Of a stretch of 5,118 bases of DNA, positions 1 through 5,118 are shown piece by piece. Source of the DNA: Zygophlyctis sp. KS116 (Eukaryota; Fungi; Chytridiomycota); assembly GCA_054661495.1 (NCBI GenBank), contig BAAFSQ010000503.1, positions 1 through 5,118 of the forward strand, read 5' to 3'. The translations under genes and the position numbers were made by a program. The stretch's first letter is position 1, and each line of letters opens with the position of its first letter. Below the pieces are notes generated by a model. It was not told the origin of the DNA. It was given only the letters and a program-made list of their open reading frames with translations, and did not search any database.

Positions 1-76
1 CAAGAGATAAGATAGATCGATCGGATCGAAGACTACAAACAATACATCGCGTTTATCTGAAAGTCGTGATTTAACA

Positions 77-80
77 AAAT
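77..80 (+). repeat. Left target-site duplication AAAT
   Basis: AAAT at 77-80 matches AAAT at 5038-5041. The 5-bp comparison (AAAAT vs AAATT) does not match. Confidence 0.85.
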
Positions 81-246
81 TGTTACAATTCAATGATCTC
101 ATTCCTAATTAAAGCCTATTAAGGGATGTTATAATCAGGCTTTACTCAAATTATGTGTGAACTCCAACCAAGTAAAAACGGAGATGTAATGCATTATTCT
201 TTTATTTCTTTTCTACTTCTAATTCAATTATGAAACATCTATGTGC

Positions 247-269
247 CGATCAAACACCAAATTTGATCG
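247..269. repeat. 8-bp perfect inverted repeat in U3 (CGATCAAA-N7-TTTGATCG); copy at 4878-4900
   Basis: Arms 247-254 and 262-269 are exact reverse complements. Confidence 0.8.
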
Positions 270-290
270 AATCTGAAACAACTTCTTAAC

Positions 291-298
291 TATAAAAG
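291..298 (+). promoter_or_regulatory. TATA box (TATAAAAG) of the LTR promoter; copy at 4922-4929
   Basis: Consensus TATAWAAR located 33 nt upstream of an Inr-like TC-A(324) that coincides with the start of the self-primer. Confidence 0.75.
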
Positions 299-323
299 AT
301 GGTTACTTTTGAAACTAGTATTC

Positions 324-336
324 ATAATTGGATTAT
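324..336 (+). other. Predicted transcription start (A324) and self-primer ATAATTGGATTAT (start of R)
   Basis: Inr-like TCA context, TATA spacing, and 13/13 complementarity to the PBS. Confidence 0.75.
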
Positions 337-409
337 CTTAGTTTTTAGTTATCAACTAATAGCTTTCTTAATTGAGTTTCCCTTAATAATCCAGCTAATC
401 GCAACAAGT

Positions 410-422
410 ATAATCCAATTAT
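410..422 (+). promoter_or_regulatory. Primer-binding site, self-priming type (ATAATCCAATTAT)
   Basis: Starts 3 nt after the 5' LTR, lacks the TGG expected for tRNA CCA pairing, and is the exact reverse complement of 324-336 in the LTR. Confidence 0.88.
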
Positions 423-428
423 ATCTCT

Positions 429-1343
429 ATGCCTCCTAAGCCTCCTCCTCCTGTTCAACCCGAACCCGGTTTACAAGCTTTAAATGATTTGGTGCAATTA
501 GTCCAGTCTCTTTCGGACAGATTAGCATCAATGGAAGCACGAGCCGAAGCTGATCGTGTGACAGCCCGTCAAGTGGCTGAAGCACAAACTCATCAATCAG
601 AACAAGCAGTTTCCCCAGGCCTATCTCAGACACTTTCTATTAATACTGCTTCTTCTTCAATTGATAACAAAATCAAAGCATCTTTACCGGACAAATTCGA
701 TGGATCTGCTTCTAATTATGATTCATTCGTCCAATCTGTGGACAACTTCTTCGCTTTAAAATCATCAGTCTATTCAACCGATGAAATTCGAGTTCGCACT
801 GTTGGGACCCTCTTAACAAAATCGGCTCTCTCTTGGTTTGGTACCTTAGTCAAAACAAAGTCTGCACTTTTATCAAATTACAATTTATTCATGAAAGAGC
901 TTGAAAGATTATTTTCTGATCCAAATTTAAAGGAAAATGCTCAGCAGAAAATAAGAAATCTTCGCCAAGGGACAGGATCTGCTCTAGCTTACTCTTCAAA
1001 ATTTCGAATTCTTGCAATCGACACTGGATTTAATAATGACGCTCTAATGGCCGTTTTTAAAAATGGTCTGAAAGAAGAAATTAAGGACATTATGGCCAAA
1101 TCAACTGATCCTTCTCCGAAGACTCTTGAAGATCTAATTGCATCAGCTACCAGACTCGATAACAGAATATATGAAAGAAAGAAGGAAACTCTTGAACAAT
1201 CTCCAAAGAAACCTTATTTCTCTCGATCTCTTAGTTCACTCACCCCACGATTTAAGAAGCTCAGTTATGCTGAAAAACAAAGAAGAATTAAAGAAAATCT
1301 TTGTCTTTATTGTGGTGACAAAGGTCACTCTCATTCAAATTGC
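429..1343 (+). other. Gag region: Pro-rich N-terminus, predicted coiled coil, sushi/PEG10-like capsid, zinc knuckle at 1302-1343
   Basis: PPKPPPP; ALNDLVQLVQSLSDRLASMEARAEA; LPDKFDG (684); LRQGTGSALAYSSKF...FKNGLKEEIKD; CLYCGDKGHSHSNC. Boundaries approximate. Confidence 0.88.
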
Positions 1344-4300
1344 TCTAAGAAAAAGTCTTTCAGCTCAACTGGAACTTCTGGTGGATCTGTATCTCCTATA
1401 ACTCCAGAATCTACTGGTGCCTCCGGCGAATCATCTACTCCGCTCGCAGCTGTCATCGATAGCCGCTCATTTATGGTGGAAGTTTCTCTACTTATTCAAG
1501 GTAAAGAAATAATTGTGGAAGCTCTTCTTGATTCCGGAGCTTCAGCAAACTTCCTTGATCTATCATTTGCCGAAGATTTAAATCTATCTACTCTGTCTAC
1601 ATCAAAGAATCTTAGTCTCGCCGATGGTTCCCCATTGTGCAATATTTCAAAAATTACAAATGCTGAAGTCACTTCTCTCGGAAAAGATGGATCATTATCA
1701 TGTGTTTCTACTGACTTTCTGGTTTCAAAACTTCAATTTAAATGCATTCTAGGACTCCCCTGGATGACTAAAACCCGACCAGTAATCAACTGGGACACAT
1801 TAACTATCTCTTTTAATAATCAGATTTCAATCGCTGCTATTAATCCAGAATGTATTCCTAAAGAATATCAAGAATTCTCAAAAATCTTTAACCCAAACAA
1901 GGCGGTATCCCTGCCTCCTCTTCGATCTTTGGACATGGAAATAAATCTCAAAGACGATTCTAAACCTCCTAAGAAACAACCAATTTATTCATTATCTTTA
2001 AAAGAGCAAAATAGTCTAAAGGAATGGATTAAGGTGAACTTAGATCAAGGACTAATCCGGCCTTCAAAATCAGAATATGGAGCCCCTATATTTTTCGTTC
2101 CTAAGAAAGATGGAACATTGAGACCTTGTATTGATTATCGAGATTTAAATCAAAACACTAAGTTGGACGTTCATCCATTACCACTTATTGCACAGCTGAT
2201 GGATCAATTGGCTCATTCTAAAATCTTTACCAAACTCGACCTGCGTGGAGCATATAACTTAGTCAGAATTAAAGATGGTGATCAATACAAGGCAGCCTTC
2301 AGGTGTAGAGACGGACACTATGAACCTATGGTTATTCAATTTGGTCTTACCAACGCCCCTGCCGTTTTTCAACGCTTTATGAATTCTATTTTTCAAGATC
2401 TTCTGGATAAGTTTGTTATCATCTACCTAGATGACATTCTCATTTTCTCAAAGGATTATGAAGCCCATGTGCAACATGTCAAGGAAGTACTTAAACGACT
2501 CAAAAAAAACGATCTTACTGTCAAACTGGAAAAGTGTTTATTCCATACTAGTAAGCTAGATTTTCTAGGATATATAATTAATGATGAAGGAATATCAATG
2601 GATCCCAGTAAAACAAATGCTATTTCTAAGTTCCCCGCTCCAACTAATGTTTCGCAATTGCGCTCTTTTCTTGGTCTTTGCAATTTCTACAGAGGATTTG
2701 TTCAGAATTATAGTCAAATAGCTAAACCTTTAACTGACCTGACTGGAAAAATAGCTTTTCAATGGAATACAGAGACTGAACGTGCATTTAATCTGCTAAA
2801 AGAAAAACTAACTAGTGAAGTGATGCTACCGTACCCAGACCAGCTGAAACCATTCTTTTTATCAACAGACGCATCCGATCATAGTATGGGTGGTGTGCTC
2901 TCCCAAATGGATAAGGAACAAAAACTAAGACCTGTTGCTTTCTTCTCGCGCAAGTTTACTGATGCAGAAAGAAATTACTCCGTATATGATAAGGAATTGT
3001 TATCAATTATAGACTGTCTCAAATTTTGGAGACATTACCTAGTTTCTCCTGTGGAACCAACTAAAATCCTTACAGATCACAAAAATTTATTGTTTTTCAA
3101 AACACCTCATCTTCTAAAACCTCGCCATGCACGATGGGCTGAACTTTTATCCCAATTTCCATTTACGCTAGCTCATGTGCCAGGTAATTTAAATCGTGTA
3201 GCAGATGCTTTAAGCCGTGCAAACTCATCTCCTGATCCCATGCCAAACAAGTTGCAACCAATCATAGTGCTACCAGATGAAAAATGGACATTGAATGCAA
3301 TAAATAGTGATTCTGAATGGCCTTTACTGATATACTTTTTTCTCAAAAATGATAAATGGCCTAATGGACTTTCAGAAGAAAAATTAGAATTGGTGAATAA
3401 AGAACTCAAAAACTTTATTATCAAAGACAATTTGTTATATTATCAATATGCCAAAAAGGATTACTTATATGTTCCAATTGATGAACGTACACCTATTTTG
3501 AAACGCTATCATGATTACCTTGGACATCTTGCTTCAAAATCAATTATTGACTTACTTACTCGACATTACTGGTGGCCTGATCTTGAAAATGACTTAAAAA
3601 ATTATATATCTCAATGTCCTAAATGTCAGCTTAACAAATCTCTACCGAAAAACATTTCAAAACAAATGGAAACTCCCCCTCGACCAATTCCTCCAGTAGG
3701 CCTCCCATTTGAACGCTGGGGATTGGATTTCGTGCAAAATCTACCAGAAACTGAATCAGGGAATAAGCATATCATCACCGCCATTGATTATGCAACAAGG
3801 TGGCCGGTCGCAAAAGCAGTTCCAAAAATGGATACAGAAACCGTCTTATCTTTTCTCTACGAATTAGTTACAAATTACGGTGCACCTATAGAAATCATCA
3901 CTGATCGAGGAAAATCATTGTTATCTGAAGCTGTGACAGAATATGAAAAGAGAAATTTGATAAAACATCATGCATCTACATCGTACCACCCCCAAACAAA
4001 CGGAATGGTAGAACGTATGCATGCAATGTTAGGACATGCTATTACTTGTCTTTCAGAAGGACTACCAAAAAGATGGGATGAATTCCTTTCACAAACTCTT
4101 TTTTCAATGCGCGTAAGAACACACTCCACCACCGGCTACTCACCCTTTTACTTACTCTATGGTATAGATCCTAGACTTCCAATGGATCCAAGACCTCCAC
4201 CGGAAACTATGCGACCCTTGGATGACGAAGAATATGATGAATTTTGTTCTGAATATACTGCTCGAGAACTCGAAATTCTAGGTGAACACCGTGCCGCAGC

Positions 4301-4727
4301 ATATCATAAATCTCTTCAACAAGCAGCCAAAATTAAATCAAAACATACTAATGAGGAATCTGCTGATTATTTCTTTGAAGAAGGAGATATGGTCAAAGTC
4401 AAACATCATGGAAAGACAAAGTTCGAGTTTAAATGGAAAGGTCCGTATTTTATTTTAAGACGAGCTCACCCAGGAACTTATTTTATCATGTCTCCTCGGG
4501 GTGATGTTTGGAAATCTCCTGTTAACCAATGCAATTTAGCGCCTTGGCTTTCTAAAACAGAGGATAATATTGATTTTTTTTATGATGGTACTACTCGAGA
4601 ATGGAATGTTAACTCAGATGTAATAGCAACACTTAACTTTACAAAGCTCTGGGATTTTTCGACTAGTGAATTAGCGCCTTCACTTCCCTCCGGCCTTTTT
4701 GTGGGGGATAGTGTTACAATTCAATGA
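429..4727 (+). CDS. gag-pol: Single-ORF Gag-Pol polyprotein (1432 aa): capsid, CCHC nucleocapsid, aspartic protease, reverse transcriptase, RNase H, integrase
   Basis: Uninterrupted ORF with LPDKFDG, CX2CX4HX4C, LLDSGA, YLDD, TDASD/KELL/TDH/ADALSR, HHCC, D-D35E and GPY motifs. First ATG downstream of the predicted TSS. Stop TGA at 4725-4727 lies within the 3' LTR. Confidence 0.97.
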   Translation: MPPKPPPPVQPEPGLQALNDLVQLVQSLSDRLASMEARAEADRVTARQVAEAQTHQSEQAVSPGLSQTLSINTASSSIDNKIKASLPDKFDGSASNYDSFVQSVDNFFALKSSVYSTDEIRVRTVGTLLTKSALSWFGTLVKTKSALLSNYNLFMKELERLFSDPNLKENAQQKIRNLRQGTGSALAYSSKFRILAIDTGFNNDALMAVFKNGLKEEIKDIMAKSTDPSPKTLEDLIASATRLDNRIYERKKETLEQSPKKPYFSRSLSSLTPRFKKLSYAEKQRRIKENLCLYCGDKGHSHSNCSKKKSFSSTGTSGGSVSPITPESTGASGESSTPLAAVIDSRSFMVEVSLLIQGKEIIVEALLDSGASANFLDLSFAEDLNLSTLSTSKNLSLADGSPLCNISKITNAEVTSLGKDGSLSCVSTDFLVSKLQFKCILGLPWMTKTRPVINWDTLTISFNNQISIAAINPECIPKEYQEFSKIFNPNKAVSLPPLRSLDMEINLKDDSKPPKKQPIYSLSLKEQNSLKEWIKVNLDQGLIRPSKSEYGAPIFFVPKKDGTLRPCIDYRDLNQNTKLDVHPLPLIAQLMDQLAHSKIFTKLDLRGAYNLVRIKDGDQYKAAFRCRDGHYEPMVIQFGLTNAPAVFQRFMNSIFQDLLDKFVIIYLDDILIFSKDYEAHVQHVKEVLKRLKKNDLTVKLEKCLFHTSKLDFLGYIINDEGISMDPSKTNAISKFPAPTNVSQLRSFLGLCNFYRGFVQNYSQIAKPLTDLTGKIAFQWNTETERAFNLLKEKLTSEVMLPYPDQLKPFFLSTDASDHSMGGVLSQMDKEQKLRPVAFFSRKFTDAERNYSVYDKELLSIIDCLKFWRHYLVSPVEPTKILTDHKNLLFFKTPHLLKPRHARWAELLSQFPFTLAHVPGNLNRVADALSRANSSPDPMPNKLQPIIVLPDEKWTLNAINSDSEWPLLIYFFLKNDKWPNGLSEEKLELVNKELKNFIIKDNLLYYQYAKKDYLYVPIDERTPILKRYHDYLGHLASKSIIDLLTRHYWWPDLENDLKNYISQCPKCQLNKSLPKNISKQMETPPRPIPPVGLPFERWGLDFVQNLPETESGNKHIITAIDYATRWPVAKAVPKMDTETVLSFLYELVTNYGAPIEIITDRGKSLLSEAVTEYEKRNLIKHHASTSYHPQTNGMVERMHAMLGHAITCLSEGLPKRWDEFLSQTLFSMRVRTHSTTGYSPFYLLYGIDPRLPMDPRPPPETMRPLDDEEYDEFCSEYTARELEILGEHRAAAYHKSLQQAAKIKSKHTNEESADYFFEEGDMVKVKHHGKTKFEFKWKGPYFILRRAHPGTYFIMSPRGDVWKSPVNQCNLAPWLSKTEDNIDFFYDGTTREWNVNSDVIATLNFTKLWDFSTSELAPSLPSGLFVGDSVTIQ
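1467..1815 (+). other. Retropepsin aspartic protease domain
   Basis: ALLDSGASANF (catalytic D codon 1530-1532) and ILGLPW (1746 onward). Boundaries approximate. Confidence 0.9.
1980..2600 (+). other. Reverse transcriptase domain
   Basis: PIFFVPKKDGTLRPCIDYRDLN, FTKLDLRGAYNLVRI, FGLTNAPAVFQ, YLDD (2424-2435), FLGYII. Boundaries approximate. Confidence 0.97.
2850..3218 (+). other. Ty3-type RNase H domain
   Basis: Catalytic D (TDASD, 2868), E (KELL, 2994), D (TDHKNL, 3075), D (ADALSR, 3204). Confidence 0.95.
3462..4548 (+). other. Integrase: HHCC zinc finger, DDE core, GPY/F module; no chromodomain
   Basis: H3510/H3525/C3615/C3624; D3726 (WGLDF), D3903 (ITDRG), E4011 (GMVER) with exact D-35-E spacing; KWKGPY (GPY at 4440-4448). 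Boundaries approximate. Confidence 0.95.
4701..4711 (+). promoter_or_regulatory. Polypurine tract (GTGGGGGATAG) with upstream T5 tract
   Basis: G-rich run abutting the 3' LTR TG and preceded by TTTTT (4696-4700). Confidence 0.85.
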
Positions 4728-5037
4728 TCTCATTCCTAATTAAAGCCTATTAAGGGATGTTATAATCAGGCTTTACTCAAATTATGTGTGAACTCCAACC
4801 AAGTAAAAACGGAGATGTAATGCATTATTCTTTTATTTCTTTTCTACTTCTAATTCAATTATGAAACATCTATGTGCCGATCAAACACCAAATTTGATCG
4901 AATCTGAAACAACTTCTTAACTATAAAAGATGGTTACTTTTGAAACTAGTATTCATAATTGGATTATCTTAGTTTTTAGTTATCAACTAATAGCTTTCTT
5001 AATTGAGTTTCCCTTAATAATCCAGCTAATCGCAACA
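4712..5037 (+). repeat. 3' LTR (326 bp)
   Basis: Copy of 81-406 at offset 4631, immediately preceded by the PPT. Confidence 0.98.
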
Positions 5038-5041
5038 AAAT
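5038..5041 (+). repeat. Right target-site duplication AAAT
   Basis: Directly follows the terminal CA of the 3' LTR and matches 77-80. Confidence 0.85.
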
Positions 5042-5118
5042 TGTTATCTTGAACTCAAATTATATGGATTGATCAATTGCTGATGTAAACATGTGAAAAT
5101 CGCGAAGATTTATTGCTT

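Follow-up and report, generated by a model that had tools for sequence, protein, structure and literature searches.

The window analyzed here, a stretch of 5,118 nucleotides spanning positions 1 to 5,118 of contig BAAFSQ010000503.1 from the chytrid Zygophlyctis sp. KS116 (assembly GCA_054661495.1), contains a single intact Ty3/Gypsy long terminal repeat (LTR) retrotransposon with one gag-pol open reading frame (ORF) and the target-site duplication (TSD) AAAT. Our results suggest that this young, self-priming element probably inserted between two outward-facing LTR-type ends, a configuration that would constitute the preferred target of its clade and whose repeated use would result in stacks of elements. 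The left flank (1-76) ends with TTTAACA (70-76), and its outward reading on the minus strand starts with TGTTAAA, the canonical LTR terminus of the clade. It is followed by the left copy of the TSD (77-80), the 5' LTR (81-406, plus strand), the internal region, the 3' LTR (4712-5037, plus strand), the right copy of the TSD (5038-5041) and the right flank (5042-5118), which starts with TGTTATC (5042-5048). The empty site reconstructed from these junctions reads TAACA-AAAT-TGTTA, placing the element in a 4-bp gap between outward-facing ends of the LTR type. The first-pass annotation had pointed out this arrangement, a palindrome centered on the TSD with arms resembling LTR termini, and it is confirmed by the coordinates, by the identical 12-mer AACA-AAAT-TGTT at both junctions (73-84 and 5034-5045) and by the symmetry of the flanks, which extends over exactly 5 bp (TAACA/TGTTA) and is broken at the sixth base. 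The AAAT sequence itself is non-palindromic, with just its outer pair of bases being complementary.

The clade terminus to which these arms correspond (TGTTA/TAACA) is a consensus obtained from 39 LTR units, two of which are spurious gag fragments. The flanks fit its TAACA end better than the 3' LTR end of the element itself, which reads CAACA. Within the window, AACA-N4-TGTT occurs only at the two junctions, compared with 0.14 matches expected from shuffled sequences. In related AT-rich DNA, the probability that a random site carries such arms is approximately 2-3 × 10^-5 for 4+4 bases and 10^-6 for 5+5 bases, and the arm motif is absent from 27.9 kb of related sequence. It could be argued that 5-bp symmetric arms arose by coincidence in AT-rich DNA and were singled out after the fact, given that the arms are short, that there is one insertion only from the window family and that its closest relative lacks the motif. 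However, with a per-site probability of this order (~2 × 10^-5 for 4+4 to 10^-6 for 5+5 arms) and the same configuration recurring about 29 times in relatives, we consider a chance event very unlikely.

The closest named relatives of the window element are found in Batrachochytrium salamandrivorans, whose Gypsy integrases are 55-63% identical to that of the window. The LTRs of these elements share the design seen in the window, starting with TGTTA, ending with (T)AACA, being preceded by a G-rich polypurine tract (PPT) and including a self-primer that pairs with the primer-binding site (PBS). Five loci of this species (L002, L003, L009, L010 and L011; 103 kb drawn from three assemblies) contain LTRs belonging to at least eight families, which directly adjoin one another in either orientation, with spacers of only 2-6 nt (mode 4) in between. 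In L002 (2718-5485), for instance, five LTRs belonging to four families line up, again in both orientations and with spacers of 3-5 nt, and directly precede a full-length element. Across the 103 kb, AACA-N3-5-TGTT was observed 30 times, compared with an expectation of 7.1 ± 2.7, and when spacers of 0-12 nt were scanned, the signal peaked at N4 (14 occurrences versus 2.4 expected), followed by N5 (10 versus 2.6). Similarly, the 29 junctions between LTRs that we curated have spacers of 4 nt (n=12), 5 nt (n=8), 3 nt (n=4), 2 nt (n=3) or 6 nt (n=2). The LTR boundaries defined independently by BLAST from natural LTR copies coincide with these junctions.

Four insertions in B. salamandrivorans show matching TSDs within LTR-LTR junctions and thus reproduce the arrangement of the window with neighbors that can be identified. 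They are located in L011 (14173-20050, TTTT/TTTT, with the start of an LTR as the right neighbor; 20676-21354, GTTT/GTTT) and in L010 (6295-11754, TTTG/TTTG; 136-6008, TTT/TTT). Moreover, spacers share 3-mers far more often within a locus than between loci (0.62 versus 0.29; permutation p=0.0004), as predicted for repeated insertion into one inherited spacer, and the frequent occurrence of both orientations at the junctions is predicted for a symmetric target. These arrays support the notion, raised by the first-pass annotation, that the palindrome is part of a self-propagating targeting habit rather than a product of chance. Two further insertions in L011 have neighbors from a single LTR family. 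One, a minus-strand element at 818-6690, lies between inverted copies of the LTR (533-811 and 6691-6970), which implies that the pre-insertion site was a long palindrome with identical arms of at least 18 nt, whereas the other (7294-13477) lies between an inverted and a direct copy. Nested insertions of the clade within the internal regions of elements (4.2-5.7 kb) were not found in the B. salamandrivorans loci. The single interruption observed is in L003 (436-3188), where an insertion of 2.75 kb divides the 5' LTR belonging to a Gypsy element; the gene it carries (750 aa) has a FAM200/ZBED5 RNase-like domain, and the insertion is probably an unrelated DNA transposon.

Although these findings argue for abutted LTR ends as the target, the window flanks could also be host DNA that happens to contain TAACA-N4-TGTTA, with the palindrome being preferred wherever it is present and without any neighboring elements. 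The window flanks indeed resemble none of the LTRs compared, the first insertion of any stack must use a site outside an LTR, and short palindromic targets are known for other LTR elements, such as Tos17 (cited in PMC6911290). However, every resolved outward LTR end in the B. salamandrivorans loci adjoins another LTR end rather than host DNA, and intact AACA-N4-TGTT sites in coding regions, such as those at L011 18431 and L009 20180, are unoccupied. In addition, the motif is missing from isolated insertions of other lineages, and in the window the fifth base of both arms also fits the LTR consensus, a match to the five-base clade terminus expected in only about 1 in 10 cases for host DNA that already has the four-base arms. 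On balance, we regard a naive host site as rather unlikely, and the two arms in the window most probably belong to the ends of neighboring LTRs in a stack. The left flank may accordingly represent the end of one neighboring LTR and the right flank the start, or the inverted end, of another.

Abutted LTR ends as the target also face a number of observations that weigh against them. Local alignment of the window flanks (76-77 nt) to five AT-rich LTRs and BLAST searches against all loci revealed no significant similarity to LTRs. The right flank shows a marginal 14-nt match to the U3 region of the element itself (p ~0.05). It also shows, at 5105-5117 on the minus strand, a 13-nt exact match that includes AATAAA to one LTR family of B. 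salamandrivorans (E=0.27), which is too weak to call; this match corresponds to the region just 3' of the self-primer in that family and would be in line with a right neighbor that is an inverted LTR. Furthermore, three isolated insertions from other lineages (L001, L012 and L013) lack the arms. The left junction of L001, the closest relative, reads ...TTCAA-GAAA-[LTR, and the right junctions of L012 and L013 read LTR]-ACGG-TGAT and LTR]-ACAC-AATG, respectively, the latter lying 11 nt upstream of a tRNA-Val gene. These insertions imply that the preference is limited to part of the clade or that more than eight bases are needed. Spacers of 2, 3, 5 or 6 nt occur several times, and the two TSD copies fail to match in several pairs, such that slippage or later events are required; the 3- and 5-nt spacers would reflect a one-base slip of the 4-bp stagger. 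A naive seed site was not found at any stack edge in the B. salamandrivorans loci; a candidate edge beside a host gene, at L003 ~8649, is instead a truncated LTR and was uninformative about seed sites. Since these loci were chosen for their integrase genes, DNA rich in transposable elements (TEs) is over-sampled, a selection that inflates the density of junctions but cannot create base-precise joints. Finally, to attribute the targeting habit to the window element means extrapolating it across the clade from integrases that are just 55-63% identical.

A second copy of the window family was likewise not found in the collections searched, and neither was an exact protein record for its ORF. The best protein match is an element from a metagenome (P0001, locus L001; 77% amino acid identity). 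An exact DNA scan of viral contigs for the LTR core and both flanks gave no match, nor did an exact scan of metagenome and genome contigs for the LTR core, and protein-seeded scans of viral, metagenome and genome contigs only returned L004, which lacks a junction. The metagenome contigs L005-L008 have no flanks, as they consist of LTR-internal units in collapsed or permuted form. Among them, L005, L006 and L008 read integrase-LTR-PBS-gag or have the same LTR at both contig ends, reflecting either collapsed LTRs or real tandems.

The adjacency of LTRs could, in principle, also be a by-product of the repeated use of a fixed hotspot in the host genome, such as an RNA polymerase (Pol) III tether of the kind used by Ty3 or a chromatin feature. 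Ty3 of Saccharomyces cerevisiae and Tj1 of Schizosaccharomyces japonicus target Pol III start sites, and the reuse of such sites with base-pair precision can put LTRs side by side. Consistent with this possibility, the element end in L013 (5116-5201; integrase 53% identical) lies upstream of a tRNA-Val(TAC) gene, at a distance of 11 nt and in a Ty3-like position. This single case suggests that targeting differs within the clade, and the inheritance of spacers within a locus is predicted by any fixed-site model. However, L013 is the only locus with an insertion within ~20 bp upstream of a Pol III gene, whereas the window and the B. salamandrivorans loci show no such arrangement. ARAGORN and Rfam searches of the 103 kb of B. 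salamandrivorans stacks detected no tRNA, 5S, U6 or other Rfam genes, and the same searches were negative for tRNA and Rfam genes in the window, whose flanks of 76-77 nt leave room for a more distant gene. The young elements, moreover, lie between two LTRs in the interior of a stack instead of beside a host gene at one of its edges. A fixed host hotspot is therefore quite improbable.

Equally, the stacks might not involve targeted integration at all but result from recombination, end-joining of cDNA, 2-LTR-circle junctions or mis-assembly. Tandems with shared LTRs (LTR-internal-LTR-internal-LTR or PPT-LTR-PBS) are indeed present in L002 (5485-17176), L003 (13601-14056) and L010 (17519-18134), and collapsed or circularly permuted contigs occur among the metagenome loci (L005, L006 and L008). 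Shared-LTR tandems like these can be produced by unequal exchange or when cDNA recombines with a copy already in place, and they differ from the stacks with spacers. Unequal exchange explains only the tandems, whereas the junctions considered here join different LTR families in both orientations. We also rejected cDNA end-joining and circle junctions, because the spacers are locus-specific TSDs between different families, duplicated on both sides of young elements, and differ from the PBS- and PPT-adjacent bases expected of unprocessed cDNA ends or circle junctions. Mis-assembly would not produce the same precise joints in each of the three independent assemblies. Overall, an origin without targeting is extremely unlikely.

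The first-pass annotation had offered two readings of the window, a stack of LTR or Ginger-like elements built up at one small site or an integrase that prefers targets resembling the ends of its own element. The former is borne out in B. salamandrivorans, where arrays of elements from different LTR families are separated by N4 spacers and all neighbors identified in the relatives are Gypsy LTRs of the same clade, with nothing favoring Ginger-like DNA transposons; in the window itself, it is held back by flanks that resemble none of the LTRs compared. The latter agrees with the enrichment of the motif at the LTR-LTR junctions of B. salamandrivorans but not with the motif-less insertions in L001, L012 and L013. 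We infer that the two are linked, with a preference for end-like targets providing the simplest mechanism for the formation of stacks.

In mechanistic terms, insertion between abutted LTR-type ends could proceed as follows. The integrase would perform an ordinary concerted strand transfer with a 4-bp stagger, with the preferred target of the clade being AACA-N(~4)-TGTT, in which the spacer is enclosed by LTR-type termini that face outward. On either strand of the target, the attacked phosphodiester would follow the sequence ...AACA and thus occupy the same position as the 3'-processing cut at the LTR end. It is therefore conceivable that an active site or end-binding surface fitted to the terminus could favor AACA in the target as well, while both arms would be recognized by a symmetric integrase multimer; this recognition by the integrase itself is what we infer from the junctions. 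Because all LTRs of the clade carry TGTTA...(T)AACA, each insertion would replace one site by two, one per junction, irrespective of its orientation. Later insertions in either orientation could then reuse these junctions, producing end-to-end stacks of elements and solo LTRs, and the formation of solo LTRs would leave runs of LTRs behind. Whether the integrase of this chytrid Ty3/Gypsy clade specifically recognizes abutted LTR termini (~8-10 bp, AACA-N4-TGTT), such that every insertion yields two landing pads and gene-free stacks extend themselves, is a proposition for and against which we find the arguments about evenly balanced.

To our knowledge, no LTR retrotransposon has been documented to integrate into chromosomal LTR-LTR junctions, and our literature search for LTR-end-junction targeting by LTR retrotransposons retrieved no description of such a process. 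Some elements of the Drosophila gypsy group are sequence-specific. In bacteria, members of the IS30 and IS3 families target their own inverted-repeat ends, and retroviral integrase acts on the palindromic junction of 2-LTR circles. By analogy, the bacterial and retroviral systems may resemble the one proposed here in that a DDE recombinase favors a pair of abutted element ends as its substrate or target, although they represent other enzyme families or reactions. Ty3 and Tj1 differ from it in that the B. salamandrivorans stacks and the window lack Pol III genes and the insertions occur in the stack interior. The rice Ty1/copia element Tos17 has a palindromic target (ANGTT-TSD-AACNT) that has been attributed to a symmetric integrase multimer (cited in PMC6911290). 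It is similar in that a short palindromic consensus surrounds the TSD, but the arms in the window have the opposite polarity (AACA-TSD-TGTT), in contrast to the Tos17 type as described there, and copy the outward termini of the element. Since AACA/TGTT arms reproduce the termini of the element itself, the site would regenerate itself. In plants, nested insertions avoid LTRs, as stated in the same paper (PMC6911290). Double insertions at a single target site have been reported for the P element and R1, whose tandem junctions retain a single TSD copy between the elements, and rare LTR-LTR junctions that are not explained by unequal exchange have been noted in the same work (McGurk and Barbash, 2018, PMC5932611). 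The single TSD copy between abutting elements is common to both situations; however, the P element and R1 use a site in the host sequence and do so rarely, whereas here the site is made by the elements, involves many families in both orientations and dominates the landscape.

If confirmed, targeting of abutted LTR ends would have several implications. Pol III, heterochromatin and promoters are known tethers through which LTR retrotransposons limit harm to their host. The joint between element ends would provide a different, self-regenerating way to spare the host, a self-made safe harbor that depends neither on a chromodomain nor on a host tether. In B. salamandrivorans, targeting of this kind would add to the TE-rich compartments of the genome, and the elements would offer a naturally sequence-specific integrase of the retroviral type for structural studies and, possibly, for the development of site-directed insertion tools. 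A caution for annotation follows from such stacks, in which LTR finders will mis-pair LTRs and misread TSDs. Gypsy elements make up ~9% of the B. salamandrivorans genome, and the paper that describes their expansion contains no target-site analysis (PMC9926174). The long-read assemblies of this species contain about 2,958 Gypsy copies. The insertion into LTR-LTR junctions would explain how they could grow to this share within repeat islands.

The anatomy of the window element is that of a complete member of the Ty3/Gypsy group (Metaviridae), with direct LTRs of the TG...CA type and a TSD within the 4-6-bp range, the order gag-protease-reverse transcriptase-RNase H-integrase according to Pfam, a PBS and a PPT. 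Its two LTRs measure 326 bp each, have the termini TGTTAC...GCAACA and are 100% identical, which, together with the open reading frame, points to a very recent insertion. An additional A shared by positions 407 and 5038 is the first base past the LTR-terminal CA. The single gag-pol ORF (429-4727, plus strand; 1432 aa) encodes a gag/capsid region (~714-1202), a CCHC knuckle (1302-1343), a protease (~1491-1760), a reverse transcriptase (~2097-2579), an RNase H (~2763-3158), the zinc domain (~3471-3641) and core (~3705-3992) of the integrase and a C-terminal module of the GPY/F type (~4374-4457). The PPT (GTGGGGGATAG, 4701-4711, plus strand) abuts the 3' LTR and is kept in all relatives. The gag-pol stop codon (4725-4727) lies 14-16 nt into the 3' LTR and the PPT is coding, a layout in which the sequence of the integrase tail limits that of the LTR start and vice versa.

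The absence of a chromodomain, already asserted in the first-pass annotation, holds true, as Pfam searches for PF00385 with the whole ORF, and with its last 245 residues even at E<=10, returned no match. The element thus lacks the chromodomain at the integrase C-terminus that characterizes chromoviruses, whereas most of the distant protein matches (25-40% identity) contain one. Located 3' of the GPY/F module, a D-F-F-Y-D-G-T motif (4572-4592, ORF residues ~1382-1388) is common to the integrase tails of the window element, B. salamandrivorans, L012 and L013; it matches no Pfam domain.

As in Tf1- and sushi-type elements, the PBS is matched by a complementary stretch at the 5' end of the transcript. 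A 13-nt self-primer at the presumed start of R (324-336, plus strand), situated 33 nt 3' of the TATA box (291-298), is the perfect complement of the PBS (410-422, plus strand), which starts 3 nt past the LTR end and is complementary to this R start of the element itself, not to the 3' end of a tRNA. Minus-strand synthesis is thus predicted to be initiated by self-priming of the Tf1 type rather than by a tRNA. The same design is present in L001, L005, L006, L008, L013 and the B. salamandrivorans loci. Across the relatives, there are five different primer/PBS pairs, whose two sides always change together in a compensatory manner, and the distance between the TATA box and the primer ranges from 33 to 39 nt across lineages. 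Tf1 has a chromodomain and targets Pol II promoters. The window element resembles Tf1 and Tf2 of Schizosaccharomyces pombe and the sushi-type Ty3/Gypsy elements in its single gag-pol ORF and in a transcript start that pairs with a PBS just past the 5' LTR, but it differs from Tf1 in lacking a chromodomain and in being located in an LTR-end-like palindrome. The U3 region of its LTRs additionally contains a box at 159-188 (and again at 4790-4819) that consists of GAACTCCAACCAAGT, followed ~6 nt on by GGAGATGTA. This box is kept across the otherwise unalignable LTRs of the window, L005, L006 and L008, a pattern of conservation suggesting that it may serve as a promoter or enhancer element.

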